Part shown: in pieces, positions 10,266 through 58,694 of the stretch
Layout: the number at the start of each line of letters is the position of its first letter
Position numbering within the stretch: position 1 is the first letter of the stretch
Assembly: GCA_016748015.1 (NCBI GenBank)
Contig: JAAOMT010000223.1
Coordinates: forward strand, 9,754-73,753
Direction of reading: 5' to 3'
Length of the DNA stretch: 64,000 nt
Source: Geosiphon pyriformis uo1
Lineage: Eukaryota; Fungi; Glomeromycota
Made by a program: the position numbers and the translations under genes
The notes under the pieces: generated by a model
Seen by the model: only the letters and a program-made list of their open reading frames with translations
The model's database searches: none
Told to the model about the DNA's origin: nothing

Positions 10266-10365
10266 ATGTCTGAAGATATTAAATGTGAATTAGAATACGT
10301 TAAGACCCAGTATGGGAGATGCGTGGAGAAGCTGAAGGAGTTTAGGAAGGGTGAGAAGGGAGATA
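10266..10365 (+). pseudogene. 5' end (codons 1-33) of the Crinkler-like kinase gene, separated from the rest by the inversion
   Basis: ATG at 10266 gives MSEDIKCELEYVKTQYGRCVEKLKEFRKGEKGD; GC- and CpG-richer than the flanks; joins in frame to RLEELKRNLR at 58691(-). Confidence 0.8.
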
Positions 10366-10858
10366 AAATTCAATTGTATTTGAGAAAGAGTTTAGTGGTG
10401 GGTTTTTTTATTCTCCATTATTGAATATTTGAGTTGTTCACATGCACATTTGTTAAGAATTTGTGGTCAGTCTGTTTATTTTTTAGGAAGTTTTTTTAGC
10501 TCGCATGACTTCATACATGTATTACAGAAGAATGTAAACATTCAATAGTTATGAAAATCTTACTGTTTGTATATCCTAACTTTTTTGCTGAAATAATCCC
10601 TCCTTTTTGGTATTCAGAAAGTTTTTTTCCAAGACACATTTGATGTGGTAAATTTTTTCATGACAAAAATGTTTGATATTTTATATATACACGTATAATC
10701 TACTGTTGTGTTTTACAAAGACACGATTTATGTTGATTTGTAGATTATAACTATAAGTAATTATAAAAAAAATTATGGCTTAAATTGGTAATAGTATTAC
10801 AATATATAGCCTTTTTTGTATATTATATTAAGTGTCCAATACTTTTTATACCTCTTTA
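10363..10858 (-). mobile_element. 5' half of a Tc1/mariner element (TIR plus N-terminal HTH region)
   Basis: TIR at 10830-10858 followed by TA. ATG at 10639 gives MCLGKKLSEYQKGGIISAKKLGY..., then after a frameshift TD*PQILNK (decayed GRP motif)...TLSQIQLNF. Confidence 0.88.
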
Positions 10859-11230
10859 TAAATCTATTTATATTAAGACTAATGTTTTAAAAACAGTTAA
10901 ATAACTAATTAAATTAGTTAGTAATAGTATTATATTATTTAAAATTGGTTAAAAAATTTTTTTTTTAAGTAAATTTTCTTTTAGAATATTAATATAATAT
11001 AATTTGATTTGATTTAAATAATTAATTATATGTAAAAAACATATAAATTGTATTTAATCTTAAGATACTTAATTTGTTTCTAATTTTTAAATAGTAATTA
11101 GGCTGTATTCATTAAATACATAATAAATTTTTTTGAAGTAATACTAATTATTTTTATATAATTAAATTATCATATATTAAAATTAATTTACATATTAATA
11201 ATATATAATTAGCTATTTAAATTTATATAT

Positions 11231-14200
11231 ATTTTTTTTTATTAAAAATTTAACAAGTGCAGTCTAACTACTACCTAAGTACATAAAACCAAATAAGATT
11301 TTAAATTAAGCATGGCTTATGTATTTTCTAGACATGACCAGCCACTCAGATTAATTAAGACAATACTATACACTCAATCTATTTACCACTAGGAAGCTAT
11401 GCAAAAAGCTAAAATGCATGCTCACCAAATCAAGATGTAAACCAAAACAAACATGAATGCCCAACCTAATACCAAACTCACAAATCAACTTATAAGACTA
11501 TAGAGATGTCAAACCAAGAACCACCAAAACCACAAATTTATTCTTTAGTAAAAAGCCGTGTTTTTTGTAATGTGCTCTCAATTTAGTATTAAGCACTTAA
11601 ATAAAAGATCAGTAATCTTTAGCAAAGCCATAAACCATATTAATAACCATCAACCCTCCATCAGACCTAGGACTCAATAGACCCACCATATCAGCTATTT
11701 AATCTTTCATCACAAAACTCTTAGCCAAAGCCATATATAAGGAATCTGAAAACTTAGCTTCTTACAAGAATTGAATTACCAAGCATTCAGCATTATCAAT
11801 ACTTATCAAGTCAAGTTCTAATAGTATTAGAAATTAACTTTTTCTTGGCATTAATGTCCTAAGTACACAAAAACAAGTGATTAGAATCCTTAACTAAACT
11901 ACATCAAATGCACAAAACACTAGAATAGCTTGGCTTGTACAGTCTTTTTTTCTTGGCTGTAGACAGTTAATAATAAACAGCTTTCATAAAGTAGGATTTC
12001 AAAGAAGCAGAGGCAGAGCTAGAGAAACCAGAACAAATATTACCATCAGAATGCCAAACTCTAAAGATTTAATGCATATCTAAATAGTTAGCAAAATTCA
12101 TGTCCACAAATCTACTTGCACATTTGTATTTTCAGTCAATAAAACTAACAGCATTAAACAGACACTATATAAAGTGACGAGCATTCTCAAAGACAGGTCT
12201 GCTCTTAACAGAAAAAAAACTATGCACCATGCCAACAGATAACACAAACTTAGACTTGATTGCAACATTTGCAAAGAAATTAGCATGCTTATTTCCAATG
12301 ACATTAGAGTAACCCTTAACCTTATTTTACTTAATTGACAGACTCTTAGAAGCAATAGTGGACTGAATGTGTTTTCTTTCAATTCAGCATTTCTCATGAA
12401 AATTGGGGCCAGTAAAGCCACTTAATGAAGCACACATATCCAAAGATGCCTAGCTATCTGAGTATAAAACTACCAAGCTTAAAACAAGAATGCAGTCTAA
12501 AGCAAAAATGATGGTCTGCATCTCTATAAAAGTTGAAAAAAACAAACCGAATATCTTAATTTCAATATTCAATGTCTGAAAAATAAGCAGTGGCACCACC
12601 ACAGGTGCCTACTAATTCCAAACCCTTAACTGACTTATCTGTGTAAATATTTATTACATTAGCTCTAATTTTTAATAATACTCTTACTAACAAAACCAAA
12701 ATCACATGAGCTTATACTGAAAGTAAAGTGGCAATTCAAAACACCACTATTAACTAAGCCACCACTCTCGATAAAAAAAACTGTAATGACAAACCAATTA
12801 GAAACATGACCTCTGAGGTCCAGTTTTTTCTATCTACAAAAAGTGTCCCAAGAGAAGCACAAGCCATAATGGTCTAAAAACTAATTTGCAAAAATGATGT
12901 CAAATCTTCTTAGCAACTCAATAACACTCAAATAATGTTCCACATTTAAGACATCTGCAACAAAAATGCCTTTGCTAGACTAAAAAACATTAGGTATATT
13001 ATTAACTAAAAAAGACTTATATAAAGCCAATGTGTTGGTTATGCCAGCCAGAAAGCAATTGATTGAATCAATTAATAATTTGACCAGAAAACTAAAGAAC
13101 TGTTGGGGCATCCAACTGGTGGCTTGGAAATCTATGGCTCTATGTTCAAACAACCTGCCAAAGATGCCCTCTGAATTGGCAAAATTAACCAAATTAGCCA
13201 GCAAACACTTAGCTTGCAACTGTCTGAAAAATTTGAGACCATACAACTCAGAATAAAACAGAGCTTTATTGGGAAAATTTTTGGGTAAGTTAGCTTTGAG
13301 CTTCAGACTTTTTTTAAGCAATCTGTTTTATTTTTCACACATATTTGCTAAAACACAACTGAATTGCAATCTATAATTAATAATAGATTGAAACACAACA
13401 AATACCAGATACAAAAATTGTTTATCTGAAACAGTCTTTCTCAACACCAGATTTGTAAAAAACTTAACATCTGAATGAGTCTTAATAATGCTAAGTTTGA
13501 AAAGACCATTAGTGGACAAAAAAATACTCAAATACCTATGAGTTTCATGCCTTTTTGCTATTGAAATACTGGAGTCACTAATTAGCAGCCAAAAATATCC
13601 TATCCTCTGATTGATGAAAATAACAACAGTTTTGTCTATATTGATAAAAATATCATTGATTTAAAAAAACTCACTAGCAATGTCCAAAATATTTTGAATA
13701 GTGGCTATGCCATTTCCAATACAAATTGTGTTATCCACAAAAGCCCCAGTCACCAAAAAAGATGTTTTGCCACCTTTGGGATCCAGTCTGCCTGATTTAA
13801 TAAAAAATTTCGAATCCAGCCTATAACCATATGTACTCTCATGTCTTTTAACTTCACAAAATAAAGAGTCATAAAAAATTCTCCACAAAAGTGGTGAGAA
13901 AACTTCCCCTTGGTCCAAACCATCATGAACAACATAACCATCTATAAGACCAAAATCTGTTATAACTTGATTGACATGGCCAATGTAAATATTTCAGAAA
14001 AACTCAATAAAATGGAGACACATCTTGATCCTAGACAAACTATTCCACAGATGAAACCACCCAACAGAATTATATATCTTTCTTATGTTCTGGAGAATCA
14101 GCCACAACTCTCTATTTTTCTTCAGTGCATCCTTAATTATAGAACTAACAGCAAAAATAGGAGCCCGAGTTATTGTACTCTTAAGAACTGAGAAGTTATT

Positions 14201-17200
14201 TCCATGCAAGACATCAAATTTACTACAAGTTACAAAAATCTTATCTAACAAGATTTTCAACAAAATTTTTTGGGCAGTCTTGATTAGTGCTATCAGTCTG
14301 GTATTGATAAGAGTCCCTTTCCAATCATATGGCTTTGGTATTATAGAAACCGAAGCATTTTTCCACATATCAGGAACAGCACTTGACATTAGACATGTAT
14401 TGAGTAAGTCCAACAAACCATCCAGAATGTATGTATAACCATGTTTTCACAACTTATTAGGGATATCAGAGAAACCAGCAGCTTTTTTTTAGGCAGATCT
14501 CTAACCACCTGCAAAAACTCATTATTTTTGATAGCATACATAACATCTTAAAAAGCAATGTTGTTGACATAGATTAAAGAGCTATACTAATCAGACCAGT
14601 AAGCAGGCAGAACACTAGAAACCACTTGTTTTTTTGTTCATTCTTCTATAATTGTATTAATTGTGAACTTAACTTTATTAGGCTCCAATATTAACTCATC
14701 ATTTACAATCAAATAGTCCAGTACCACCTTTTGAAAAAGATATTAAAGCATTTCTGATTACATGCTTCTTATCAGAGCTAAAATTCTTCATGTGCTTTTC
14801 AATTGTTTTTCTAATTTGAACATTTCTGGCACTTTCAATTTATGATACTTAGATCTGTGATATCTCTTTTTTATTCTTGACAAGTGATGTAAAATTAAAT
14901 CTAAACAAACCCCATTACTAATTATAATATACAATTTGAAAGCTTTACCATTATCAATATTAGACCAAGCATTGATAAGACAGTTAATCTCCAAGCCTAA
15001 AGACACACTAAAGCACTTTATTATCTTGGCCACCAATAACTTCAAACCAAAAAATTTTGATGATTGTTTATTCCTTGAACACCCAAACTTACTAAACCAA
15101 ACCCTAAAAAACATCTTATTAGCAAATTCCACTACCACCCCCTTTAAAACCCTCTATATAACATTCAAATCTCTACTATCTTTTGCACTATTGAATTCAG
15201 CCAACACCTTTAAAAATTTGCTTAATGAGCATTTTCTAAAATGCAACTATTTATTAAAATTGACATCTTTGAGCCTATATTTCCATTTATCTCTATTAGC
15301 CTGTTTGTAAATGCTATTAAGATAAGCATTCAAGAGGCCATTCAAATTAATAGACACCAAAACAGCTTTGTGATCTATATTAAAAAATTCAGAAACAGAA
15401 ACAATTTTATTATCAGCTACTACAGATAATAAATTATTACTGATAAAAATGTAATCAATGACTTTCTTAACATTTCTTAAGTTGTTCCAAGTAGACATTT
15501 TAATCAGTAAATAACCACAAAAAGAATTGACTAAGTCCAAATCCAAGCAAAACCTAAAACTTGCACTTCTTTTGAATCCACTCTTATTGAAATTTCCATC
15601 CAGAACCATATATGTAGAAAAGTTAACAGTTTTAGTAATAAGAAAGTTAATTTCTAAAGCCTGATTAAATCTGGTTTTAGCAAAAGTGTCAGCATATAAA
15701 CCCAAAATTACAACTGATAGTTTGCTTTTAAAAAAAAGATAAACAGAAACAAGACAACTAGAGATCTTTTCAACCTTGAAAACATGACATGCAAGAGAAT
15801 TGTTTATAATGATTGCCATCTTAGCACCTAGAAACTCTTTGTCTAAGCCAGAAGAAAATATCTTCACTCCATCAAACTTGTTTACAATCCATGGCCTAAT
15901 ATTAGATCTCAACTTCATTTCTGTAACAATAGAAACCACATTACCAAATTTTACATGCCAATGAACAACATTCTTCTGCTTGGCAGAGACATTGATACCT
16001 CAGACATTACACATAGCAAATCTCTATACCAGATTTGTTATTAAGAAGAACAAGTAATGAGAACTAAACCAGTATTGTCTATTTTAGCTGAAAGACCCAT
16101 AACTGTGATTGACAGATTTTTTAAGATTTTTTCTATCTTTAAGATAACCAAAAAATCAAAACCTATTACTTTTACAATAGTCTTACCACCAATGACCACA
16201 CCCAAACTCTCACTTATCACTATATTTGCTCCTTAATTCTGTGATGAAGGAGTCACCAATGGCTGACTTTTAGAATTAAGCTAGAAAACTGTTGATCCAG
16301 ATGTGTTCAATCTCTTAGCCAACTTGTTGATGTATTCTGCAAGGCTGGCAAGACTATGCTTAAGAGCAGCAAACTTATTATTCAATTCAAATAACACTGG
16401 CAGAAAAGATTTCATCTCTGAAAAAAAATCAGGACCTGACAAACTATTACCAGCAGAGAGAGGAGGGAATAAAAACCCACCAACAATTTTTGTCCAAGAA
16501 ACACCACCAAAAAAAATAAGATAAGATATCACTGACCATTTAGCATAAATGAATGCCAGTCTACTTTTATTATTTTCTGACAATACTCTACAAGATAGAC
16601 TATTAGGAGAATTTTTTCCACCCAGAACACAGCTCAAAGATATATGACCAATTCTCTCACAAGATGAAACCAATGCAGTTTGATATCCCTCAGCATTGGC
16701 ATGGTTTCCATTACAGCATCTAGAGATTCAGCAAAGTTAAAGCAAACAACAGCACATCTACTCTGGGAATATAAAACAGGATGATGATCAATAACACATG
16801 TTTTTCTATCCACCAAACCAATAAAGTTTCAAATATCATGAGTATTAATCTTAACAGATAGTGTATAGAGCAAAGTCTTATAGTAATCCCTAACATCTCA
16901 TAATTTTTTGTTTAAATTTGTCCTAGCAATGTGCACAGCATTTTTCTGATCAGAATAGACCATTCTGCAGTGACCAAATCAGCATAATTTAATCACTTAA
17001 ATTCTACCACAGTCTTCTGTTAGAGTTCTACCAACTGCATTTTGATTGATTTAATAATACCAAACTTAAAAAACATAGTGCACACAGCCTCAGTAGAAGT
17101 ACTAATTGGAATTTCTTTCAAAACCACAGCCCAATTAGAACACCTGGCAGATTTTTTAAGATCAGTATTTACCATAATATTTGCATTAGTAGTCTTTTCA

Positions 17201-17948
17201 GTGGCTTTTATTAGATTCAATTTGAAGGTAAATGTCATTTTAATGATCTCTATAAATTTTAAGGAAGTAGACACCCTTTCAAAACTATTGATTTCTGAAA
17301 ACAACTTCTTAATTATGGCATATTTATCTAAAGGCATTTTGCCAACCACCTTATCCAACCCAATATCTAATGCAAACAATTTTTTAACAGAAATATTGAC
17401 CAAATTCTTCAAAGAAGGAGGGAGTTCCAAAGAGCTATTTGAGAAAACATCATCTATATTATTATGACTTGTAAAATTTATCTTTCTTAATGACTTGCCC
17501 AATGCTTTTTAGTTTTGATACTTGGCTTTTTAGATGTCTGATTAAGATTACCATTAGCAAAAACACTACTTTCATCATAGTCAAAGCTGGTTTCCTTTAC
17601 CAAACACTCTTTTTTCATATTAATGCTATCAGACTTGGTGGTATTATCAGTCTTAAAATCTGATAAACAATCATTTGGCTTCTTAGTAGATTTTTTTTTA
17701 TCTCCAATACCCTCTTCTAAAGTATTATCTTTCTTCTTCTTTCTTGACAAAACAGATTTGAAACCTCTACCAGAGCCAGAATCTTCAACAACTTTCTTTA
17801 TAACAGTAATACTAAGGCTAACAATAGTCTCAAAAACAAAAAACAGCTTGATTTTATTGTAATGAATGGTAAAAAAAACTTCTTAAAAAACTCTCTTGAC
17901 TCTTTTTTGGAAATTTGAGATAAATGAAAAAAAAAAGTTTTTTTTATT
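11231..17948 (-). mobile_element. LINE copy A: near full-length, inactivated (ORF1 ~17860-16038; ORF2 APE-RT-RNase H-Zn ~16041-11366)
   Basis: APE motifs (MCNV*GIN, VTEMKL, IDYIF), RT motifs (QGEVFSPLLW, GAFVDN), RNase H (IYTD), poly(A) at ~11232-11240. Possible low-complexity TSD TTTATATAT at 11222-11230 and 17949-17957. Many stops. Confidence 0.9.
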
Positions 17949-18645
17949 TTTATATATTAAAATTATATTAAGTTAAATATTAAAAAAATTTTATTTTATT
18001 TATAAAAAAATTAACCAGTATTATTTTAACAAATTTATTTATTTAAACATTATTTTTTTTGTTAAACTTAATATATTAAAATACAAATAGTTATTATATT
18101 ATTAAAAATATTGTAACTTATTAAAAATTTATTAATATTTGAATAATATATACTGAATTTATTTTTTTGGTTTAATAAACTTTATTATATTATCTGAATC
18201 TTATATCTAAAAAAAACAGAATATTAATTGTTTTAAAAAAATTTTTTACTAATTAGCAAATTTATTAATATATTTATTTTTAAATACACTATTATAATCT
18301 TAAATCTTAAATTAAATAATTTTAAGTTTTTTTAATATATAATATTTGTTATATAATATTATTTTATTTAGTAATAATTATAAAAGTTAAGTAATAATAA
18401 ACATATTTTTAAAATACAAATATTTAAAACTGTTTAATTATTTGAATTTATAACTACTTTGTTAAATAATAAGATATATTTTAAAGCCAAAATTATAATT
18501 TGCAATTTTATTATTGTTAATAATAAACTACAAAACTATTAAAACTAAATAATAAAATTGTTTATTTTAATTATTTTAGACTACTATCTTAATATTATAA
18601 ATAGTGCTTAGACTTTGATGAAGTTCAGTCTTGAAGAGAAAATTA

Positions 18646-19590
18646 TGTTACTAGTAAAATATTAGCCAGTAAATTAGCATGAAATTATTTTTATAATTTC
18701 TATTATTAATTAGCATATATTATTATTATTCAAATTATTACTTATGATTAATTAAAATTATTAAAGATTACTAGTTAATTAATAATCCAATTTATACAAT
18801 AGAAATTAAGATAATTAAATGACATAATATATTGAACTATGTAATATTTAAGAATTTGTAAAAATTTGTAAAATTTACCAAAATAATAAATAGTTTACTA
18901 AAATAGTTAATAGTTTATTAAAATAATTTGTAGTTTGTCAAAATTATAACAAAAGAAAAAGTTTAAGTTTATAAATTAATACTACAACAAATTATATAAA
19001 AGAAGAGCTTCTCTCTTCAAAAAAATATATCTTACTATAAATATCTTATTTTAGATTTATTTTCATTAAAAGTACAATTCAAATAAAAATATTCTTTGAA
19101 ACCTAATTTATAAAATAATTATATTTAATATTCTTCAAAATCCAACTAATATTTTAAAATTAATTAGCTACCAATTTTAGTAAATCATTAATAATTTCAG
19201 ATCTGAATTATAAAACGATTTTCTTAACAAAATCTTATTTCTCTTATATTTTTTTTATTTTTTTTATTTTTTTTTATTATAATTATTAAAGTAGTCTATA
19301 GACAAGATTTTTGTAGAAGAGTTAACTTTTACAGTAAAATAATTACATAGTTTAATGAGCTTCTAAACAAGCAATTTCTGAGAAAAAGTTGATATTTACT
19401 ACAACATAACTACACAAAATAACTGGTACAGAATTGGTCATTTTACTTATAAGTTCAATAATTCAAATTATAAAAGATAATTGAAGATAAATTCAGTTAT
19501 CAGAGGTTCAACTACTTTTAAAAAACGTGAATTTACAGCAAACAAATCTTAATAACATTTTAAAAAAAAGACCAAAAATTTCTGGTAATA
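18646..19590 (+). repeat. Left LTR of old Gypsy
   Basis: Starts TGTTACTAG, ends TCTGGTAATA (decayed GTAACA), followed by a decayed PBS-like TTTAATGTTT. Confidence 0.85.
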
Positions 19591-22622: not shown

Positions 22623-23310
22623 TAACCTCCTCCTCAAGACTGAGCTCTGTTGAAGTCCAAGTACTGTCTGTAATTTCCAGATAATAATCCAAAATTATTG
22701 AAGAAATTTGGTCTGAAAATTGTTGAAATTTCAGTTCTGTGAGCTTTCCAATGTATTGAATCTTCAAAGATTGTAAAATTGGGTTTTGTAGGACGTTTTT
22801 ACAAGTGTAGAATAGGTCATAAAGTTTAAGAGCAGTTCTTAATTTATAGTGACTGTTTGTAGGTCCAGCTGTTGTTTTGAATTCATTATGAAGTTGTTTT
22901 TGAATAGCTTCTTTTGTGAGGTTTGCTGCTGTAAGTTCCCGTTTTCATTCATGAAGTGTTTTTTCAATGTAGAAATATCTATATATTAAAGTATAGTCGT
23001 GGTTTTCTTCATTAAGACACAGTTGAAGTTTTTGTTGAATAATAGCATTTGGTGGAATACTAATAGGAATGGACATTAAATTTTCTCTTAAAGCAAGTTT
23101 CAAGAGTTCTGGTAGATAAATTCCAGAGTAACTTCTTGTGTTTTTTTTGTAGGGGTGATAATTTCGTGAATTTGGGGCTAAATTGGCAACTATTTCTGTT
23201 TGGGTATAATTAATATGTTTTCCTGTAATAGTGATAGATAATTCGGGTATTGTCTTTAAAGCTAGCATTAATTTTTGAGATATTTGTTGAATATTTTAAG
23301 GGATAGTCAT
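22591..23310 (-). pseudogene. Gypsy 3' accessory ORF3 (~239 aa, unknown function)
   Basis: MTIP*NIQQISQKLMLALK...LHE*KRELT...LYDLFYTCK...SLEEEVMLLDEIRDTV*. Two stops, both explicable as C>T. A homolog lies in the old copy at ~42569-43290. Confidence 0.75.
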
Positions 23311-23455
23311 TATAAAATTTTGAGTGAGAAAAATAGATTGAAATTATTTTTGGTATGTAAGTTTTTATGTTATTTTTGTCTTTCTGTGTATTTTGTTTTG
23401 TTTTGTTTTTGTGAAATTATTTTTAAATTATAAGGGAATAACTAGTAAAATTAAA

Positions 23456-26400
23456 TTAAGTGTTCAAGTTGGACGGTTGTTCAATGACAACTATTGGTTC
23501 TAAGTTTTGGAGAATATCTTTGGGATTGACTATAAGAGAATGTGTACCAATTTGTGGAATTAATGGTTTAGGATTGTTTCTGGAATGATAGTGTTTTAAA
23601 CGATCTCTATGTGCAACTTTTGCTAGGATTTTGTTATCAAGTCTTAACTTGTATGATTTATTGCCTAGTATTTCATAGATAAAAAATGGTCCATCCCATT
23701 TATTTTCAAATTTTCCACTCCATTGTTTTTCAGCTTTAGTTCTGTATAGGAAAACTTTGTTTCCAACTTTAAAATTATTGGTAACTAGAGGCAATTTGTT
23801 GTTATGCCATTCTTTTTGTTGAGTTTGGAAGTGTTCAATATGGGTGGCTGCTTTTCGTCGTCTTTCTTCCAACATGCTGAGAAGTGTGTAGGCTCTTCAT
23901 TGAAGTGTTTCTTGGAAATTGTTTTCATCAATTGGTTGTGCTGGATATGTTTTTATTGTGAAACTAATTAGTAATGTTGCTGTCCTTCCATAAGTTAGAT
24001 CAAATGGTGTGTGTTTTGTGGTATTTTGTTTTAGTGTTCTGTATGCTAGTAACACTAATGGAATAAAGATATCCTACTTTTGCTCAAAATCGGTTGAGAC
24101 TTTGGCTAATGACTCACACAATGTTCTGTTAAAACGTTCCACGAGTTCATTTGTTTGTGGATGGTAGAGTGAAGACAGAGGTCTTTTGACATTGAATTGT
24201 TCATAAATTTTTTGTATTAGATTGTTCACAAAATGTGTCTCCTGATTGGATATCAGTGATAATATCGAATTTCTTTGGCCAAAGATAAAAGTTGAAATGA
24301 TGTAGGGCCCAAATTACAGCTGCTGTTTCCAATTCAGTGGCAAGATAATTTTTTTCAGCTGGTTTTAATGTTCTGCTAGCATAGGCAATTACTCGCTCAT
24401 TTCCATTGTCATCCAGTTGTGATAGGATAGCACCAAAGGCAGTATAAAAGGCATCTGTTGCTAATTAGAATCAGTTGCTAAAATTTGGGTAGGCAAGAAT
24501 TGGAGCTGTCATTAATTTTTCTTTGAGAATTTCAAATGCATTTTGGCATTCAGCAGTCTATTTGTATTCGACGTTTTTGGTAGTAAGCTGGTTGAGAGGT
24601 TTTGCAATTTCTGAGAATCTTTTGATAAACTTCCGATAGTAGGAGGCTAATCCTATGAATCCTTTTAGTTTTGTAGTGTTTTGAGGAGTTTTAAAGTTTT
24701 TGACAGTGCTAATTTTTCTAGGGTCCGGTTTGATTCCATCTTTACTAATGATGTGACCAAGGAAGACCAGGCTTGTTTTTCCAAAGTAGCATTTTTTGAT
24801 ATTGAGTTTTAGTCCTGCTTTTTGTAATTGTTGAAAAACTTCTCGCAGGTGTTTTAAGTATAATTCGAATGATAGAGAATAAACATCAGTATTGTCAAGA
24901 TAAATGACTACTGACTTCCAAAGGAGTTCTTGGTACACAACATCTATTAATCTCTGAAACATTGCTGGTACATTGCATAATCCGAAAGGCATTACATTGA
25001 ATTCGTAATTTCTGCCTTGGGTAGTAAATGCTGTTTTGGGGCGATCTTTGGGATTCATAGTAACTTGTCAGTAACCACTTTCTAAATCTAGTGTTGAAAA
25101 GTATTTGTATTTTCCCAGGGCATCTAACATGTCATCAATTTGGAGAAAGGAATAGGCATCTCCAATTGTAACACTGTTGAGTTGTTAATAGTCAACACAA
25201 AATCGTATCTTTCCATTTTTCTTTTTAATTAGCACTACAGGTGAAGCCCAAGGATTCATGAAGGGTTGGATGAGCCCATTGTTAAGCATTCATTGTATTT
25301 CTTCTCGAATGAATTGGTGGCTTTCTGGAGCAACTCGGTAGACTTGTTGTCACCTTGGTTTGGCATCTCTTATGTAGATTTGATGTTGAACCAAATTGGT
25401 TCTTCCTAAGTCATTGTTGTTTTTGGCAAAAATATCAGCAAATTCTGCAATTAGCTCTTTGAGCTGGTTTTGTTGTTGTGGTTCAAGTTGTCCCATGTTG
25501 ATTCGATATAGTTTTTCCATGACAACATGGTAGTTTTCAGAGCTGAAATTTGGGTTGATTTTTGGTAGTGAATGTCCAATAATCTCAAAGAAATTGGGGA
25601 CTGTTTGAGGTAATTCTTGCTGAAATATATTACTGTGAATAACTCCAATTTCTAAATTATTTAATAAAACTATGGAGTAATTATTGGGGTTGTAAAAAAT
25701 AACTTGGACTTTCTTTGTTCCTTTTGGAATATAAATGTTTGGGATCGAAATATTATGTTCTAAGCAGACTTGTTTATTGGACTCAAAAATTTGTTGTATG
25801 GTTGTTGGCTTTGGGCAGATGTAGATTTCTGGATGTTCTCCAAAGAGTGAAATAGTAATTGGTTGTGGAAGTCTGAGAATCTGGTGGGATTCATTCTGTG
25901 TGTTAAGAGCTATATTAACTGGAACTGTGAATCGTCCAGTTGAACCAAAACCTTGGGTTCCTCTATTGCTTTTTCCTAATTGTTCTCTTTGATTGACTAG
26001 TTGCAAACCCGAAATGTTGATTAGGGGTAAATAAATAGCTTGGGCAATTTTTTCAGCATGTTTGATTTTGAATGATTTGTCAGCTTCATTTTGAAGCATT
26101 ACTGTAATGTCTCCAGTATATCCAGCATCAATTATTCCTCCTTTGACATTGATTCCTTTGCTTGCCAAAGAGGACTGAGAGGCAATTTGAATCATTGCTC
26201 CTGGCGGGATTTTGAGTGCAATTCTGAGATTGATTTTTGTGAGAGATTTGGGTTTAAGAACAAAAGTATTCTTGTCTGGATATCTTAGGTTATATTCAGC
26301 ATCAATTTCATGTGCTTTTTTGGGTTTTATTCTTTGTCTGTTGTTGTTGAAGTATTTAAGTTGTAAGGCAGGCTGATTTTCAATAAGATAGATGGGTGTT

Positions 26401-29400
26401 GTTTCAATTTCTTCCATTGCTTCAGGTTCTCCAAATTCAATTTCATTCTCATCACTTTCACTGGGCAAGAGGATGCTAAGAGCGTAGCATTTAGAACACC
26501 ACTGTTCATCATAAGGCATAATGCATTCTTCACATAGCCTAATGTTCATTTGCTCTAATTGTTGAATTTAAGCTTTTTGGGTTGGGTAGGTGTGACTTGC
26601 AATTTGGTAGTAGACTTCTACTTCATCTTCGTAATTGAATCCAGCTAATTCTATAGTGTATTCAATGTATTCTGCTTCCTTCATTTGACGGACATCTTCT
26701 TTGGTAGCTCCATTAATTAATGCCATTGTTAAGTCGAAAATCATTTCAGCATCATGGGGGTAGTAATAAAGTTTGTTGAAAGCACTGTTGTATGTTGCAT
26801 TAAAAGATGTTTCTCTTTTTACTTTTTCTGAAATTGATAAAGCATATTGGCAGGTCTGATCGCAGACTCCTTCTCTTATTGCTATATCAATCCAATTGCA
26901 TTCTTCTAGTAGCATATCTCCACAAGTTAAACAAGAGGTGTTATCCCATTTTCCGCTTCTTTTTATTAAATGGCTCCATCATTCTCTATGGCAAGTCTTA
27001 CAGTAATAACAAGTATGATTTTCATATTCTTCTTCAGGTAAAATGCAGACTCCCATTGATGAGAGTTTCTTGTGACAGTCCTTGCATTTGAATAGAATGT
27101 AGGGGTGTTGTTTTCATGCTTTTGGTTTTGAATAGGAGACATTCCATCTGGTTGTCACTAGTTCTTTTGGTTCAAGAGAATTATTTGTTGAAAAGTACTG
27201 TTGTTCAGTTTCATCAGCCCAGTTGAAGGTTGATCCAAGTGCCATAAATGTTTTAATGATGGGCTTTTCTTCTTCTGGTTTGAATTCAAAAACTGGGGCT
27301 TTTTCAGAGCATTTGTTAAATATACCACAAGTGGCAGATACCCGGGTGTATTGTCCTTAGTAAGAGATTGTTAACTCTTATGTCTCTCAATTCAGATTAG
27401 TATTGGCTTTTTGAAGCCAATCATTTCTGACAAGAGCTTGGTACTGGGGCACGTCCATCACAAGAACTTTGACTGAAATGGTGATTCCATCAAGAGTAAA
27501 TGGAAAATTGTCAATTTCTCCTACTGGAGTTTTTTTCATACTATCAGCAGTAATGATTACTGTTTAAGCTGGTCGGTCGACATTTCTCTTTAACTGTTGC
27601 ATTAACTGGTAGGTGATAATGCTTCCAGTAAATCCACTGTTTAAGATCAAGCAAATTGTTTTTCCTTCGACTTCTGCTTCAGTGTACATAGCCGTGATTG
27701 CTTTTTGTTCATTGGTAGCTGCATTGCTAAGCAGGAATGGGGACTTATTTGCTTCAAATTCAAAAGGGAATATATCTGAAAGGTTGGCGTTTTCAGCAAT
27801 TCTGGCTGGTGAGATTGTGGTGGGAGTATAGGAAGGGTTTTGTTGTTGTGCTGTAGCTTTACCTTCTGAGAGTACAGTATGGTGAAAATCCTGTTCTTCT
27901 GGCATTGTTAAATAACTGGGTTGAGTATGATAGTGGTTGGGTCTTGGTTGAGCTGGATTTCGGGGAACCAATTGGTTGTTTGAACTGATTCTATTGTTGT
28001 TTACTTGGTATTGGTTTTGTGGTGTGAATTGATTTTGTGTAATCAATCTTTAAGCAGGTACTTGATAATGTTGTGTGGGTGGTTGTTGGTATTGCTGTTG
28101 GATTGGCTGTGGGGCAGACTGATAATAGTTATTTTGGTATTGAGGTTTTGGTAAATAGTAAGCTGGTGGTGGTGGTTGATAATAAGATTGCTGTAGTGGA
28201 GGGTAACGTTGATTACTCTTATTTTGTTGGTCTCATTGTAACTTTCTGCAATCTCTTTTCCAGTGGCCAGAGATTCCACAGTAATGGCAATTCTGAGGCT
28301 GGTTATTAGAAAGTGGTACAAGTTATTTTGATTTCGTCTTTGGGGTGGTTGATATCTTTGGAGTTGCTATTGTTGTTGATTGGTGAAATAGTTTTCAATC
28401 TTCTTTGTGAGTTGGTCAATTTTTTTCTCAGCTGCTGAGCTGGTTTTTCCAATTGCCAAATTTACAAGTTTTGTTTGATTGGCCTCTTCCATGACCATTT
28501 CATATCTTTTTGCATGCTGTATGGCAGAGTTTAAATCTTCTGGGACATGTAGACGGACTTTTTTAATTAGTTCATCTTTTAGACCAGTGATAAATTGATC
28601 CAAGATTTGAGCATCGGAATAATAATTGTTTGTTTCGAGTTGGCAAATTTGTTTGAAAAGTTTGTTAAATTTTTTAATATAAGTTATAACAGATTTGGAG
28701 GATTCTTGTTTGATATTGCAAAACCGATTTTGAAGGATGATGAAGGTATTATTGTTGGTAAACTGTTCAAGGAAGGCTGCTTTAAAAGCGTTCTAATTAT
28801 TGAATGGAGCAGCCAAGTTTTCAAACCATTCTCCTGCTGTTCTTTTGAGAAAGTAGAAAATTGTTCTTAACATTCTGGCAGCATTCCATCCATTTGCATC
28901 TTCAGCTTTAGTAACTTGGTTAAGCCATTCTTGGAGACTGGTCTTAATGTTTTCTCCATTAAATTCAGGAATTTTTGCGATGTATGCTGTCATTTTGTCT
29001 TCTTTGTTTTCATTGTCTATTGATTTTTTTTCAGTTATTTTAGAGTCATTTTCTTCATTTGCTGCTGTCTCAGAGTGTTCACTTTGATTTTCAGCTAGAA
29101 AATCAAGAAGACTGGAACTAGTTTGAAGGAGTTCTTGCTGTCTGGTGAGGTTTCTGAGTGATGTAAAATTTTCTAGTCTTGCAAATCAATTTAAGGATAA
29201 ATTAGGTGTTTGTGCTTGTGCAAATGAAGCTAGAAAAGATGTGATGGTGAGTGGAAGTTTTGAACTGGTTCCTTGTTCAGGTGTTTGTAAGTGTTTGGCA
29301 GTTGTTTTTGATAGTATTGGAGTATTTGGGGTGGTTTTTGAGTATTGCTTCAATTTGTGTTTGCTTTTGTTGCTTGTTTCTGTCTCCAATTCAAAATCAA

Positions 29401-29725
29401 TGAAGTATTGAGACTGCACTGAGTATGTTTCTTCACAGTACTTGATAATGTTAAAATTAAGTTCTTGAAAGTAAGTGGCAAGTGTTTCACTATTAAGGTC
29501 TTCAGTTCTCAACTGTGAATAGTGTGCTAAATTATTGTAAAGGTTGCTTCTAACTTCTGAAATATTGTAATTTCCAAAAAGATAATTGTTAATGCAGTTT
29601 TCAATGTATTGGTATACTGATTTTTTGACAACTTCAATTCCGTCTGGAATGTTGAATCTTTGCTTGCAATGGGTGTAAATTGACTGATAATACTCTAGAG
29701 TTGTTGCATCTGGTGTGGTTGCCAC
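23456..29725 (-). pseudogene. Gypsy gag-pol polyprotein
   Basis: Capsid-like IAKIPEFNGE...WFENL; zinc knuckle CHYCGISGHWKRDC (~28250-28290); protease LILNSG (D>N); RT (VMPFGLCN, IYLDN); RNase H; integrase core remnant with GPF C-terminus. Stops, one frameshift near 28320 and one internal deletion. Confidence 0.93.
25936..26370 (-). other. Trimeric-type dUTPase domain within Gypsy pol
   Basis: Five motifs in order: DAEYNL, ASQSSLA, GGIIDAGYTG, KIAQAI, RGTQGFGSTG. Confidence 0.93.
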
Positions 29726-29768: not shown

Positions 29769-29770
29769 AA

Positions 29771-48500: not shown

Positions 48501-49079
48501 GAAATTTTTATTGTTGTAATATTATTTTATAGAAAAAGTAAGGAATCTATAATTATTTTAAGTTTTATAATAAATTGAACATTTAATAACTTTTATTTAT
48601 TTAAAATAATAGTTTTATAATTATTTTTGTCATATTGGATTTGGTTACTACTTTTGTTAGTAAAATTGTAATTTAAATAATTTTATTTTTAAAAAATACA
48701 AAAAATTTTTTTTATTGAAAACTTATTAAAGTATTTTATATATATGTATATAAAAAATATTTAAAATTTAAAATTTAACTGGTAAAAAAAATATAAATAT
48801 GTACTTCAAAGTTATATTTCTAATGTTCTTCAACTAAAAAGCTTTTTATAGTTTTGGTTTGTGATAAAACCTTAATTTTAAAAGTTATTTTTATTATTTC
48901 AACTTATAATTTCTAAAGTATTTTTGATTTAAGATAGTAGTATATATAATACTTTGCCATTAAAAATTTGTAAAATAGATAGCATAAGCTTTAAAAAATG
49001 TAAATAAAAGCAAATTTATCTTTTTATGATTTAAAAAACTTTATACTTTTTGACAAAAAATTTTACTGCTTGATTTTCT

Positions 49080-50210
49080 GATCCAAACATTATAGAATAT
49101 TTATATTTTGTTGTCTTTCTATAATAGTCTTCTAGATTATTTTTAAAATTATTGCTTTTTAATCTTATATAGTTCTATCTAAATCAGGGTCTATTATTTG
49201 GCCCATCATAAGGTCTATTTTTTTTAATAAATTTGTTAAGTTTAGTATTTTCAGTTTTGTTATTTCCAAAAAAAAAAATTTTTTTTTCTATCTAATTATT
49301 CCTTCCAAAAGTGACAATATTGTAGATTATAGCTGTTAATTAGCTAACCAATTCTTTTTACTTTTATTATGTTTACTATTGCTCTTTTATTATTACATAA
49401 TTGATGAAAATTGGCTGAAATAAATTCATTTTGAGTTGCTTTAAAGTAAAAATTTAAAATTATTTTTAAGTGGATTTTCAAAAAAAAAAATTTATCTTTG
49501 TCTTGAATCCAATGATCTAACTGTTTTATATTATGTGATTAAAAAAGCTTTGAATCAATATTTAATCGAGTAAAACATAATGGCTGAGCATCTACAAACT
49601 TTTAATAATTACCTAGTACAAAATAATGATGTAAAAAATCTTTATATAAAGTTTTAGATAAAATTTTAGCAAATGATTTTATTTTGTGATAAAAGTCAAC
49701 TAATGATATGTTAAAAAACCGGATTAAAGATAAAAATTCTTCAATGATTTCTTTAAAAGTGTTAAAGTTTTCATCTGTTTAGTAAAAAACTTTTTTGATC
49801 TGAATATTTTTATCCAATTTAGCAACTTTCTATTCTACAATTTTTTTCCATATTTTAGATTTTTCTATATTTAAATCATTCTGGATTAAAATTAAGGAAA
49901 AAGTATTTTTACTGAAAAAAGTAAAATCTTAGAAATTGAATATTATAACTAAATTGTTAGCAGCTATTTCAGTGCAAAATTCTTGTAACTTTTTAAAAAA
50001 ATTATGCATAAATAAAGTTTTTTGCAAAACGGCAAAATTTTTTTTTAGCTTTTTTATATAGTGCTCAATCAAATATTCTTTAAGTGAATCAATAATATTC
50101 TCTAAAATAAGTTAATCAGCAGTAATAAGCAATTCTAAAATGATGTGTACTTTATATCTATCAAAAGAAATTTCACTATTATAAATATATCTAAACAAAA
50201 AAATAAAATA
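49080..50210 (-). pseudogene. BTB-BACK-TLDc protein pseudogene
   Basis: YIYNSEISF...ILELLITAD*LIL (end of BTB); LQEFC...IWKKIVE*...LSLIRFFNIS (BACK); QLDHWIQDKDK...NFHQLCNNKRAIVNIIKVK (TLDc). Many stops. Confidence 0.75.
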
Positions 50211-50789
50211 CTGTAAACTTTCATGAATAAACAATCTTTTACATCATCAATTTTTTAGAGAAGTTGCTTATTTATAAGACTTTTTAAATACTTAATGCCT
50301 ATTAGTTTAATAGTTAAATTATTTACTGTACATATATCTATTATAAATTTTAATCGTGTTACTAATTTATTGACCATCTGATTAAGCTATTTTATTGGTA
50401 TTAGAAGCTAATATTTCGATTATTATAAATATAATAAAATAAAATAGATACTTGTATAAAATACAACAACATAAAAATAATATTTTTAAATAAGGCATAA
50501 TTTTGAGTAGTATATACTGTAGTATTTTTAATATTAATCTTAAGAAACTTTGGATTTATTGTAGCAAAAATTATTAAGTTAAATTTCAAATTAAAAATTG
50601 AATACTATTATTATGAGACTCAAAATCTTAACAAATATCTATTTGATAAATATATTATATTAATTCTAAAGGATTTTTCATTTGTGATTATGTAAGCTTT
50701 TTGTATCCTAATCATGTGATTTGACATATTTGTCTAATTTTTGGCACTTGTTTTTATTAAATTACTGTAGCAAAATTATCAAGAAAAAT

Positions 50790-51260
50790 TTCGACTGCTT
50801 TAGTGCTATTAGGCAACAATTTAAATGAAAAAATTATCGAATTTCAAAGATTTATAATCTAATTTCAACTAATATAATTTTTTTTAAATAGTTAATATAG
50901 ATAAAACTTTCATTTATTTTGATGTAACAGGTTCTACTACAATTACTGTAAAAAGAGCCAAAACTATTCAAATTCAAACAAGTAGTAATAATAAAAATTG
51001 GTTTACTTGTGTTTTAGCTATAATAGCAGATGATAGCAAACTCTTTTTTATGATAATTTTCAAAGATGTACAAACTTCTTTTAATCTTTTCAAAGATATT
51101 GTTATATATATGTATAAAAAAGCTTGGATGGATGCACATTTAATGTGTGAATGGATAGATCAAATTTGAAACAAACATCTTGAAATATTAACAGCATCCA
51201 AACCTATCTTTTTACTTGTTATAGATTTATTTAAAGAGCACAAAACTGAATCTCAAAAAT
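50790..51260 (+). mobile_element. pogo/Tigger-like DDE_1 transposase fragment
   Basis: IVNIDKTFIYFD...WFTCVLAIIADDSKLFFMIIFK...KAWMD...LLVIDLFKEH matches the pogo pattern NMDET...KAWMD...LLVxD. Confidence 0.8.
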
Positions 51261-51329
51261 AAATACTTCAAAAACCAAAAGATTTAATATTTGTGAAATA
51301 GTTAGGTCTTCTATTAGTATTCTGGAATA

Positions 51330-54300
51330 TACTTTAAATAATAATGAAGTTATGCACTTTTATTATCTTTTAGTGTTTTTAAATAAAAAGTAAATCACTT
51401 TTAAGATTATTAAAACTCAAATAAAAATAGCTATTAAGAAATTATTTGTTTTGAACATTAATTTTTTAGTAGTAAAAAACAAATTAATAATAATAAAAAT
51501 TCAAGTAATCAAAAAATTATTCTTATTAGTCAATAATTTTGGAGGAGTTACTACTTTTTTAAAATTTAAAATAATAATTAGATTTACATTTATATTAAAA
51601 AAAAGCATAAAAAAGACCATATTATTGGCCAAAAACATTATGATAAATAATAATATTAAAAAACAAAAATTCTGTTTAGATTAAACTATAGTAATCAAAA
51701 AAATTCTTATGAATATGCCAAAAATAATTGTTATTACAGTAACTAAATATAGTTAAATAGTATTAATCTAGTTATAGTTAATTAGACTATAACAGAAAGC
51801 TATAATAAAATTTGTCAAATCAAGTTAAACCAATTAATTAATATTAAAATGGATATTTTTATTTAGAAAAAATTTAATATATATAGCCAAAGCTATAGAA
51901 AATCACAATATTTAAATATTAAGAAATTAATTTAAAATGTTTTTGTTTATTTTGACTATAAAAATAACTGCTTATAATTTAAATATTTTATTAAAAAAAA
52001 TAGTGGAAAAACATATATAATTAATTAATTATTTAAAACTGGTAATAGAATCTATTATGCTGTGATTGATTTTGAATTAAAAAAAATTTTGAATCAATTT
52101 TTACATAAAGCTAATTTTTAATAATATAAAACTTTTTTGAACTAAACTAAATGTAGTTTATTGTGAAAAATATGAATATTTTAGATATTTTGTTCTGAAT
52201 TGTAATATACTAAGTACATTTATTCTTCTATTTTTAAGAATATATAAGAATTTTATTTCAAAAGCAAATTGTTTTTAATTGACCAAATTATATATCAAAA
52301 AAAATTTTTTATTTTACATTTTGCTGTTTTTAGTAACAAATTATAAACTTAAGTGGTTTTATTAGCTTCTGTTTTTAATAATACTTGCTTTGGTTTTGGT
52401 TTTAGTTTGTCTTTTTTTGATACTTTATATTTTGATAGAACTCTTTTTGCTCTATAAAATAGTTTGTTTATTGATATTTTTTTGGTTTTTTTAAACCATT
52501 TTTTGGAATTTTTGGCTAATTAAATGTTTAGTATTGTATAAGAACTTAGTAATACAAATTTAATACTTTTAGTTTTTGCTTTTTAATTTTTTTTATCTGT
52601 TTTTGTGTTTTTAAATTCAAGTTTGAATTTAAATATAATTTTAGATAATTTGTAACCATTTTTTTTTTATTTTTTTTAGTTACAATAACTAAAACTTTAA
52701 ATTTAAATATAAATAGGTCTAAGATTTTAATTATCAAAGTAAAGATTTTAATTATTAAAGTAGATAGCTTAAAATTAAAAATAATTGCTTTTAAAATTTT
52801 TGTTAGTTCAGTTTTAATAAGATTAAATTAATTATGTTTTGGTTTAAACTTTTTAATATATTTTTCACTTTAATAACCAATTATGTTTAAAAATTTGTAA
52901 TATGTAATATTAGAGAAATAAACAATTTGGCTAAACAAAAAGATATTATTAGATAGCATAAAAATTCTAGCAATTTGGTTTTTATACTTATTAAGACAAA
53001 ACTAAAAAAATAGATTAAGTTTTGAATTATAAACAGATTTTCAGATGTAAAAGTTTTTATTTTTGGTTCAGACACTAATTATTTAGATTTAAAAGTAACA
53101 ATAATAATAAATAATATTTTTGTTTAATATATATGCAAAGTTTTTAAAATTTTTAGTCATCTTTTTTAATTTATCTGTTATTTGACAATAAACTTTTAAT
53201 AATAATACTGAGTTTATATGTTAATATTTTTGTTAGTATATATTTTGATTGAATTTGTAAAATAAATTTATATATTGTTAAAGCAGTTAATTTAAGTTTT
53301 TATGTAATATTAAGTGGTAATTTTAATAAAAATATAATAAAATAAAATATAAATCTGAAAAAATATTTTAATTTAGATTTGTATAATTTTCTTTCAAATA
53401 ATTTTGTTGTTAAACTTCTAATTTAAAATAATTTAAAAAGTATAAAAAGACTATAAATTATATTTTTATTAATAAATATTTTTTGATGGCTGTAGTTAAT
53501 CAAAAAATTAATAGTGTATTTGATTTCTTTAATATTGATCACATGGCTGTTATAATTTCTTTTAACTTAAGTGGTTTTTTAAATAAATATTTAAATAAAA
53601 TTTAGAAATATGCTAATAAAAATTAATAAAAGTTTAAGATTAAAAATATGAATTATGCCAAATAAACATGTTTTAAGAAAGTCTTTTTTGCTAAGTTTTT
53701 AATAGTAATAAATAAGTTTGTAAATATAAAAATTCTTGATAATTTAGATGTTATATAGAAAATATTAAAAAAAATAATAATAAATTTAGCTAATTTGATA
53801 TTTTTTAGACATTAATTTAGCAAGTTTAAGTGTTTAAAAAACTAAAGTTTTTTGGATTAAAATAGCTAATAACTAAGATTATAAAGAAATTAAGCTTAAA
53901 CAACAGACTTAAATGTGATTATTTCATTAAAAGATAGTCTACTATTAATGATAAAAAGTTTTTTAAAGTTAATAAAATTATAATAAAAAAAGCAAAAAGT
54001 ATTTATAGTGCTGTTTAATTTGTAATCTTATTAGTATATACTATTAAGTTATATAAAAGAAGATATTTTTTTTAGTATAATAAGTAAAATTTGAATAAAT
54101 AAATTAGTTTTAATTATTGATAATCTATTTAATAACAAGATTGTCAGTTTGTTTAAAATATTAAATAAACTTTAAAAACATTATAATAACATATTAATAA
54201 GATGTTTTTTGAATCTAATAAACTTTTATTTAACTTTTGACAATGTTTTAGTTTTTTTGAAAAACAGTATAAGTTTTAATAATTTTCAAGTTTTATAATT

Positions 54301-56613
54301 GGAATATTATTTTTACAAATATATAGCTTATTGTATTTATTAAGATAACTAAAAAAATTTTTGACAAAATTTTTTTGATTTGTATTTTTTTGCTTATAAT
54401 AAATATAATGTTTTTTAAAATGCCAATTTCTTGGTTTTGAAAGATACTTTGACCCAATTTTTTGTGTTTGCAATTGGTTTGATAATAAAAAATACTTTAA
54501 AAAAAAGTTAAGAATTTTAATTGGTTTAATAAAATGTGTGTAAAACATATAATTTAGTTAATTAATATTATTTAGAAACTAGTTTGAAGTATATGTTAGA
54601 AATAAAATATTATGATTAAAAAAAGATTTATATTTAAAACCAATTTGCTCAAAAAATTTTTTAATCAAACTTTATACTATTTATTTCTGTATAAATTAAA
54701 GTTTTTTAAACAGATATAAACAGAAAGTAAAATAACTTTAGTAGTTTGGTTTTTTAATACAATTAAAATTCTTGGCCAATTATTTAAACACTACTTTTTA
54801 GATTTGCAAGTTTTAGAATAGATATTTATAAACTTACTATAGTACTCAATTAAGGTAAAAATTAGTCCTGTAAATAATTATTTGGTAAACATTGTAAAAT
54901 TTTTTCTAAATAATCAGATTTCTTTAATCAACAACTTATTTAGCATATTTTGTAGTTTTTATTACTTTTTAATATCCAAGATTTTGGAATATTTTTATTA
55001 TTTTAAGATAATTTACTCTTTGAAATATTTTAGTGTTGTTTTCAGAAACAAGTTATTAAATAAACAAAAATTAATTGTAAATTAAAAAATTTTTTATTAT
55101 TAAAAAAAATTAAATCTTAGAGACTTAATACTATTATAACTTAAAAAAACTTTAGTTTTTATAAATAATTTCTTATTAAACCTAATAAAATTGCTCTTAT
55201 TTTTAATTGGTTAAATTTTTTGTGTTTAAGAAAATTTTTGAATATTTAAAAATATTTGCATAGATTATAAACAAGTATTTTTAATGTTTATATTAATAAT
55301 TTTTTAAAATATTTAAATATGGTAAAGGTGGTTAGTAAAATAATAGCTTATTTTTTTAATAGTAAAATAGATATAAATATAAAGATACATAAATTATTGT
55401 TTTTAATGATATTGAAATTACAAATAATTGTTTTAATATTAAAATGTATTTTTTTTTCTGCTTAATAATTTTGCATATAAACAGTTAAGCTATTATAAAT
55501 ATATGTGTTTTAGATTTTAAGTTTTATCTATTTAATTTTTGAAATAAGTATTAAATAGAAAGATATTATATGACTAATTTTAATTAAATTGAAAAATATT
55601 TTTGTTAAATAGGTAAAAATTAAAAATTATTTGAAAAATACAGAAAATAACTGAACTGATGTTTTTGTATATATTACTATATAGTCTTGGGTTATTTTTT
55701 CTATTGAAATTTGCAAAAAATTTATTGTGGCTAATAATTAAGTCATATTAAAAAATACTTATTACTTTGTTTATAATATCTATCAGATTATAGACTGAAC
55801 TAGTATGACTGTAGTTTGATATTTAAACTTTTACATGGTTTCAAAGTTTGCTAACAAGACTTTAACTGTTTTTGGGATATATTTAATAAAAACAGTCTAT
55901 AAAAAATTATTAATTATAATTAGAAAAAAACTTTGTAATAAAAGTTATTTAAATATTTTGTGTTTAAGGTGTAATAATATTAAACTATTTAATTATGTTT
56001 TTATGTGTTCAAGAAATGTTTTTATTTGTTCTAAAATTCTGTTGAATTATATTAATTTATAAAAGTCTTTGATAAAATCTTATTTTCTGTTATTATTCTT
56101 GGTATTGTATATTTTTTTTTGAAAATTTTGTGTAAAAACTTTGTTTTTAAGAACTGGACTAATAAGACAGTATTAATTTTTAGTAATAAAAAAAAAACTG
56201 TTTTAGTGGTGATTGATTTTATTTATTATTTAGTCGAAAAATATAGTAGTAAATTATAGTTGTTTAGATTAAAGTTCAGGGTAAATATAGAAAAAAGTGA
56301 TTTAATTGATAATATAAATATAATAACTGTTGGTTTTGAAATTTTTTTAGTGTTTTGTTAGTTAAAGTTGTTCATTTGCTTAATATTATTAAGTTTTTTA
56401 CTGTTAGTTTTAAATTGTACAAAGTTTATTTATTTTTTTTAAGTATTGTTAATAATATAGAAATTTATATAAGTATATAGTATTGTTTTGATTGGTTCAA
56501 GTGGCTGTTCATATGTAGTAAACATATAAATCATATTTAATTAGATTTACTTAGTTTGTTTCTGTATATTAAATAATGATTGGACTGTACTTATTAAATA
56601 TAGAAGTAAAAAA
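51330..56613 (+). mobile_element. LINE copy C: very decayed, with internal ORF2 deletion
   Basis: Colinear with copy B from mid-ORF1 to the 3'UTR and A tail; junction ATAA at 52873-52876; tether/RT region shortened near 54000-54280. Confidence 0.8.
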
Positions 56614-57097
56614 TTAATTAATTTTGTTATTTTGTTATTTTTTTATTTAAATAATATTATATACAAAAAAAAGTTTTTAAAGTTAACATAATTTATAAAA
56701 TAAATTTGATTATACCAAAAATAACAAGTTTAATAATATTAAATTAAAGAAAAAAATTGCAATTTAAAATATAATATTAACTAATTTAGATAACTGGTTA
56801 CATACAAACAAAACATAATCAAATTTTGTTTTTTTATAAATTGTTAATATTAATATTTTAAACTTAAAATTATTACAAATTAAAATAAGCATCGCATATT
56901 TTTTATTCAAAAAATAATGTATTATTTAAAAATCTGAAATAAAAAATACAGTTATTAACAGCTAAAAAAATAAAATACTTTTTTAATTCCGAAAATATAA
57001 AAAAACAAAGATAAACATGACAAATTTAAAAATTAAGATTGATTTAAGCAAATAATAAAACTTGTATAACACAATTGTACATCAGTAATTTAAAAAT

Positions 57098-58694
57098 CTA
57101 AGCTTGCATTATAGATAATTGCTCCTCTGGCAAATTAAACCATTCATCTTTTAGAGCATCATTTGCAGTCGGTCGACTATTAGAATTTTTGTTCATCAAT
57201 TTTTCCCTAAACTGTTGAGCGGATGAAGAAAGTGAAATATGGTTGTAAATTATAGTATGTTTGAAAAGATTTCCAACCATCCATATATCTCCTGCAGCGC
57301 TANNNNNNNNNNNNNNNNNNNNNNNNNNNNNNNNNNNNNNNNNNNNNNNNNNNNNNNNNNCGAATATCCCGATGGACGACGTTCATCTTATGAAGTTTTT
57401 CTAGCGTTACAAGTACATGCCGTATAGCATCTCGCAGCTCGGGTTCACATTCAGGAAATGTCTTAAAGCCAACTGGAGCCAAATGTACTACCACTGAGTG
57501 ATTTGTAAGGTAATAGTCAAGAACCTTGATTGGCTCTAAGCCTGGAAGCGTATTTTGGTAAAAATTTTTATGGAAACCTAGATCAACAATGCTTGTTTTG
57601 TCTATTTTTTTAATGATCTTGTCGAGGAGTATTGTAACAACACAATGTGACCGTTGGATATCATCGAATAGCCTCAATATTGGAGCTGTGATGTACTGAT
57701 CTCGACACAAAGTCCGAAGAATCCGAAAAAAATTGATTGTGTACTTAAGCACTTGATAGTTGTATCCTCGGTTTGAACTGTTAAGGACCAGATGTTCGCC
57801 AATTGTCTGACGTCTTGGTATCACGCCCGTTGTATCATCCACGTAATAATAGTAAAATTGCAAATGTGTGCCCCCCANNNNNNNNNNNNNNNNNNNNNNN
57901 NNNNNNNNNNNNNNNNNNNNNNNNNNNNNNNNNNNNNNNNNNNNNNNNNNNNNNNNNNNNNNNNNNNNNNNNNNNNNNNNNNNNNNNNNNNNNNNNNNNN
58001 NNNNNNNNNNNNNNNNNNNNNNNNNNNNNNNNNNNNNNNNNNNNNNNNNNNNNNNNNNNNNNNNNNNNNNNNNNNNNNNNNNNNNNNNNNNNNNNNNNNN
58101 NNNNNNNNNNNNNNNNNNNNNNNNNNNNNNNNNNNNNNNNNNNNNNNNNNNNNNNNNNNNNNNNNNNNNNNNNNNNNNNNNNNNNNNNNNNNNNNNNNNG
58201 TTCAACTGGCAATTTTTGAAGTAACTTTGAGGTAAAACAGTTTTCAAGATTGCTGCGTGTGATTGGTTCATCGAAGGGACGACAGAGAAGTTCTAGAAAT
58301 GATGAGGTGTTGTCAGGCATGTCAAGTCTAGCACGCTTCGCAAGGTGTTCTAGAATAACCATAGAAAATAGAAAGTAATAAGCGTTATACACCAAATATT
58401 CTCTTAGATATGGATATTCCTTCCATAAAACGCATATGATTACAAAATGAATGAATAGTAATATAGATTGTATGGATGGAAAAGTGGAATTTACAAATTT
58501 GTTACCTGTATCATCTATTGCTGCACGTAGTTTTTCTGCCCATTTTCGCAGCTCCTCCTTCCACTCGTCCTTCTGTATCTCCAGCTTTTTTTCTTGCTTT
58601 TCCAGATCTTCCTTTTCTTCTATCCATGCCTCTTTTTCATCAGTATCCGTCCACTTTTTTACTCTCAGATTCCTCTTCAACTCTTCTAATCTAT
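57098..58694 (-). pseudogene. Main body of a Crinkler (CRN)-like kinase gene lacking its 5' end (coiled-coil header, intron 58505-58350, kinase domain)
   Basis: Charged helix RLEELKRN...WAEKL; G|gtaac...ttctag intron; KRAR; HLAPVG...ELRDAIRHVLVTLEKLHKMNVVHRDIR; AGDIWMVG; RPTANDALKDEWF. No stops in the visible exons; two N gaps. Confidence 0.8.

Follow-up and report, generated by a model that had tools for sequence, protein, structure and literature searches.

A probable balanced inversion of about 48.3 kb that divides a Crinkler-type kinase gene and a Tc1 transposon in Geosiphon pyriformis

The locus and its two junctions

We analyzed a stretch of 64,000 nucleotides from the fungus Geosiphon pyriformis (contig JAAOMT010000223.1, here C526, positions 9754–73753; referred to below as the window; G+C content 24%), in which a Crinkler-type protein kinase gene and a Tc1 transposon are both cut in two. 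One flip of the segment 10366–58691, about 48.3 kb as written, restores to the base the kinase gene, the Tc1 element of 1354 bp and the site at which Tc1 had inserted into an older repeat. Because a gene, a transposon and a target site are restored by a single flip, the agreement is far beyond chance, and the ancestral state is therefore fixed. We regard it as probable that the arrangement is a real, balanced inversion produced by two double-strand breaks with precise end joining, which would have inactivated one copy of the kinase family.

Paralogs were searched for within the assembly to which the contig belongs (G000; 128.3 Mb, 792 contigs). A table in PMC9453076 lists the Geosiphon pyriformis assembly with 129 Mb, 795 scaffolds and 64% repeats, and the phrase “k-mer binning based approach” is quoted second-hand in connection with it. 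The features at and around the two junctions are the following.

10000–10265 (+), kinase upstream region, with blocks 80–98% identical upstream of many paralogous kinase genes
10266–10365 (+), kinase start, 33 codons and one base (MSEDIK...GEKGD), ending at the left junction
10363–10365, left breakpoint, ATA, between ...GAGAAGGGAG and AAATTCAATTG; the same as 58692–58694 in the inverted sense
10366–10858 (−), Tc1 5' part, 493 bp, with the 5' terminal inverted repeat at 10858–10830 and TA at 10860–10859
10859–12400 (−), left half of the older host repeat; copies elsewhere are 67–84% identical
56300–57302 (−), last kinase exon (about 57301–57098, end of the kinase domain and stop) with 3' flank; Pkinase profile positions 227–263; 83–93% identical to and collinear with paralogs
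57303–57360, gap of 58 N in the kinase gene; about 202 bp in paralogs, including an intron
57361–57877 (−), kinase middle piece, 171 codons open, HRDI catalytic-loop motif at its end; 92–93% identical to paralogs
57878–58199, gap of 322 N in the kinase gene; about 432–439 bp in paralogs, including a PD-(D/E)xK-like motif; open coding sequence in paralog C635
58200–58691 (−), kinase piece after codon 33, a coiled coil and then a hydrophobic stretch, 163 codons open; 91–98% identical to paralogs
58692–58694, right breakpoint, TAT, between ...CTTCTAATC and TAAAGATACC, from direct reading of the letters
58692–59552 (+), Tc1 3' part, 861 bp, with a DDE_3 transposase remnant and the 3' terminal inverted repeat; TA at 59553–59554
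59553–61100 (+), right half of the older host repeat; full-length copies elsewhere are 74–81% identical

Each base is used once, and no base is gained or lost at either junction. The only sequence common to the two breakpoints is ATA/TAT, so that the exact position of the break is ambiguous within these 3 bp (10363–10365). With the base composition of the window, 9.6% of random breakpoint pairs would share at least 3 bp. A first-pass annotation made from the letters alone had named the two junction triplets and proposed a reciprocal inversion of 10366–58691 with 3 bp shared and nothing gained or lost; direct reading confirmed the triplets, and the geometry was borne out to the base.

There are four runs of N in the window (1249–1268, 1808–2150, 57303–57360 and 57878–58199). 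The nearest gap lies 8.2 kb from the left junction and 492 bp from the right one, and both junctions stand in uninterrupted sequence, therefore neither is a scaffolding join. A flip of a scaffold piece at the gaps was rejected. Both kinase gaps are inside the flipped segment, and the inversion would measure about 48.6 kb if they were as long as in the paralogs.

The split kinase gene

From the ATG at 10266 the kinase frame runs for 33 codons until the break. As assembled, the open reading frame (ORF) 10266–10424 carries the kinase start into antisense Tc1 sequence and stops after 52 amino acids. The left flank (10000–10365) and the reverse complement of 58691–58200 each have dozens of matches in the genome, and in many of these places the two matches abut with zero bases between them, for example at positions 28031 and 28032 of C641 and at 208043 and 208042 of C627, and also on C606, C538, C568, C515, C542, C724 and C559. 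In 16 fetched loci, which represent 10 distinct paralogous places, base 10365 is followed base to base by the reverse complement from 58691, the letters being ...AGATA and directly after them GATTAGAAGAG. Each kinase piece was compared with the paralogs on its own.

The three pieces downstream of the break (58691–58200, 57877–57361 and 57302–56300) keep their order and strand in three paralogs (C673, C635 and C771), and nothing contradicts their being parts of one collinear, putative kinase gene. By comparison with the paralogs, the written lengths of both gaps appear too short, which leaves “in frame as written” without meaning; a fill of 432 bp in the gap of 322 N would bring both flanking pieces of the window into frame.

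In an apparently intact paralog, a 554-codon ORF precedes an intron and the last exon. The N-terminal part of its product is coiled-coil and hydrophobic; farther on there are a PD-(D/E)xK-like stretch, which matches HSDR_N faintly, and a protein kinase domain with HRD. Its residues 158–541 are 44% identical over 390 residues to a protein of Funneliformis mosseae (P0009; E = 1e-91), which carries the Crinkler N-terminal domain PF20147 at 56 bits. PF20147 itself was matched neither by the 33-residue start in the window nor by the 554-residue long ORF of the apparently intact paralog. The gene had been called Crinkler-like, and this holds for the C-terminal nuclease-like and kinase module but not for the N-terminal header, which is a different one. 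Judged by these similarities, a Crinkler-type C-terminal module with another header is the accurate label.

Several further observations concern the paralogs. The upstream blocks 10000–10098 and 10091–10365 are contiguous in the window and about 270–650 bp apart in many paralogs, which means either an insertion in the paralogs or a deletion in the window copy. Several paralogs (L037, L039 and L040) are shorter by 9 codons, or about 27 bp, immediately ahead of the break (10334–10360), a difference that leaves the frame intact. The first 113 bp past the break (58579–58691, −) are 100% identical in C641, C627 and C606 and 99% identical in C538, and the matches end at base 113; this suggests either gene conversion or a single N-terminal header that is combined with various C-terminal modules. 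A more distant copy of the kinase N-terminus (81% identity) lies on the same scaffold, C526 of G000, at 77913–78094 (−), about 4 kb beyond the right end of the window.

The split transposon and its host repeat

The reverse complement of 10366–10870 has matches at more than 40 places in the genome with 88–95% identity. In 12 other Tc1 copies the reverse complement ending at 10366 is joined base to base to 58692, the letters being ...GATTGAATTT and directly after them TATTAAAGATAC. Rejoined, the two parts of 493 and 861 bp give an element of 1354 bp with TA at each end. The first-pass annotation had rebuilt the same element, with 29-nt terminal inverted repeats and TA on both sides, and the 12 contiguous copies uphold it; in the window copy the two repeats agree at 22 of 29 positions. 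Among the seven differences between the 5' and 3' repeats (10830–10858 and 59524–59552), six are transitions.

The element has the marks of the Tc1/mariner group, namely a DDE_3 remnant, terminal inverted repeats, a TA target duplication and a single TA at empty sites. The DDE_3 match (E = 1.8e-6, 28.3 bits) lies just under the Pfam cut-off of 28.6. The ORFs of the 3' part are spread over several frames, with interruptions of the reading frame at several points, therefore the window copy was or is dead.

A third layer, which the first-pass annotation had not seen, is the older repeat that hosts Tc1 (L041 and L042), whose halves are also rejoined by the flip. At two places where this repeat has an empty Tc1 site (C733 and C632), the matches of the 10859 side and of the 59553 side overlap by exactly TA.

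A search with the full-length element for other split Tc1 copies gave whole or nested copies only (40 candidates scored) and is uninformative on how frequent such splits are. One nested pair of Tc1 elements in opposite orientation (L008, at C560:152206–155704 of G000) is an ordinary nested insertion and not an inversion.

Content of the flipped segment

The remainder of the segment is listed here.

12401–56299, interior, rich in transposons, with LINE-like (long interspersed nuclear element) sequences and a long terminal repeat (LTR) retrotransposon, and with zero runs of N
23456–29725 (−), the LTR retrotransposon, with a dUTPase domain in the pol region (E = 1.9e-20), a reverse transcriptase and an integrase SH3 domain

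Pfam scans of eight larger ORFs in the interior gave retroelement-type domains only, although no search was aimed at a recombinase gene.

Proposed origin by two breaks and end joining

None of the 21 inverted pairs in the window places a long inverted repeat at 10363 or 58692, so homologous recombination between inverted repeats was ruled out. Transposase end chemistry was ruled out as well, as had been proposed from the first reading: the break in Tc1 is 493 bp inside the element, and the sole TA duplication dates from the time when the element inserted. With these two routes excluded, end joining remains, and we infer a break-and-rejoin mechanism and an arrangement that is present in the DNA, not merely in the assembly.

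The proposed course of events is as follows. The ancestral order was the kinase promoter, the whole kinase gene (+), about 46 kb of transposon-rich DNA and the old repeat carrying Tc1 (+). One double-strand break would have fallen in codon 34 of the kinase and the other 493 bp into a Tc1 that was already dead. End joining would then have religated the intervening segment in reverse, without gain or loss of a base and with chance microhomology of 3 bp at most. As a result, the kinase promoter would now drive a stump of 52 codons, while the nuclease-like and kinase module would lie 48 kb away without a start. Since promoter and start are separated from this module, the copy would be inactivated.

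Alternative explanations

The first alternative is that the true locus is uninverted and that the junctions come from chimeric molecules or from the assembler. Several points weigh against a real inversion and on the side of such an artefact. A gap comes as close as 492 bp to the right junction, which lies in a gene family with copies of 91–98% identity; both junction partners are repeats; and the contig with the right junction is linked to the remainder across two gaps inside this multi-copy family. Moreover, neither junction had an exact match in metagenome contigs, which says little, as records of the Geosiphon genome may be left out there. Exact look-ups of the junction-spanning ORFs in public assemblies gave nothing. 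Among sequencing runs, one (X1) contains the stretch, with 0.79 of its words, and probably represents the sample behind the assembly; two further runs from the sample of X1 contain almost none of it. On the other side, both junctions lie within contigs and are exactly reciprocal with each base used once, so that an artefact would need two independent mis-joins at exactly reciprocal bases. Known amplification chimeras give single inverted joints and not reciprocal pairs, and the 3 bp common to the partners are too little for a cross-over in a graph assembler. The contig 2151–57302 by itself carries the kinase start (+) and the last kinase exon (−) 47 kb apart, and the inverted layout thus has a basis beyond the scaffolded gaps. 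For these reasons we judged the inversion to be probably real and an artefact to be unlikely.

The second alternative is a real, young inversion that is still mixed, with both orientations present among nuclei or individuals and no programmed switch. It would accord with the multinucleate state of the Glomeromycotina and with the kinase pieces (n = 4), in which there are 0 stops in 1302 coding bases. However, stop-making substitutions are 5.2% of those possible, and the chance that the pieces stay open is 0.51 at 1%, 0.13 at 3% and 0.03 at 5% divergence. The absence of stops thus only bounds the divergence since the kinase was inactivated to roughly 3–5% or less. The stop-free pieces place the break after the expansion of the Tc1 family, in which copies differ by about 10%, but the break need not be recent. 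The claim that the event is “recent or polymorphic” is accordingly weak. Searches of the assembly with the flanks of both junctions found no second contig in the uninverted order; the best other flank matches are at most 98% identical and are paralogs. A mixed state therefore seems to us quite improbable.

A wider conjecture would make this inversion one of many base-precise balanced inversions in the Geosiphon genome that share a lossless mechanism with cohesive or blunt ends, some perhaps differing among the nuclei of one fungus, with effector-like genes broken and whole side by side; we consider it a long shot.

The last alternative, an enzyme-guided event or reversible switch, is very improbable. 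It would involve site-specific recombination, or else cuts at TA staggered in the manner of a transposase or topoisomerase, and might toggle an effector-like gene. In its favor, the rejoining is perfectly balanced and TA lies within ATA/TAT at both breakpoints, where staggered cuts of 2–3 nt would yield ends fitting in the flipped sense. But TA abounds in DNA with 76% A+T, so that its presence is not evidence, and about 10% of random pairs have a 3-bp match. Moreover, the Tc1 copy is dead and broken 493 bp from its end, the eight scanned interior ORFs are of retroelement type, and neither inverted recognition sequences beyond 3 bp nor flanking inverted repeats were found, which also leaves unsupported the on/off switch suggested in the first-pass annotation.

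Significance

That a large gene family should lose one copy through a two-break inversion in a transposon-rich region belongs to ordinary genome evolution, and the case adds an example to a known kind of event without being surprising in itself. Its ancestral state is legible at three levels, which makes the inversion a good marker, including for structural differences among Geosiphon nuclei.

Comparison with known systems

In the invertible switches Hin, Gin, Fim and Flp, as here, the orientation of a segment joins or separates a promoter and a coding region. The Geosiphon segment differs in that it lacks inverted recombination sites and consists of 48 kb of transposons, its eight scanned ORFs being of retroelement type only, and in that no second contig with the other orientation was found in the assembly. 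Rearrangements driven by a transposase share with our case a Tc1/mariner element at one breakpoint and TA at both breaks. However, the Geosiphon breakpoints are not at terminal inverted repeats, there is no new target-site duplication and the element is degenerate. Where inverted repeats or transposon copies recombine by non-allelic homologous recombination, the inversion is also balanced and has a transposon at one breakpoint, whereas the partners here, a kinase gene and Tc1, are unrelated and not two copies of one repeat.

The affected gene family can be compared with the modular CRN effectors. The likeness lies in the C-terminal part of about 390 residues, 44% identical to the Funneliformis mosseae protein with a Crinkler N-terminal domain. 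The header is different, being coiled-coil and hydrophobic instead of a Crinkler domain, and so is the partner, since Geosiphon lives with a cyanobacterium and not with a plant.

The closest likeness is to the two-break inversions by non-homologous end joining reported in many eukaryotes, which have reciprocal junctions, 0–3 bp of microhomology, no flanking inverted repeats and unrelated breakpoint sequences. The Geosiphon inversion differs from them in being unusually clean, without deletion, duplication or filler at either junction, and in that, both breaks having hit repeated sequences, its ancestral state can be recovered three times over.

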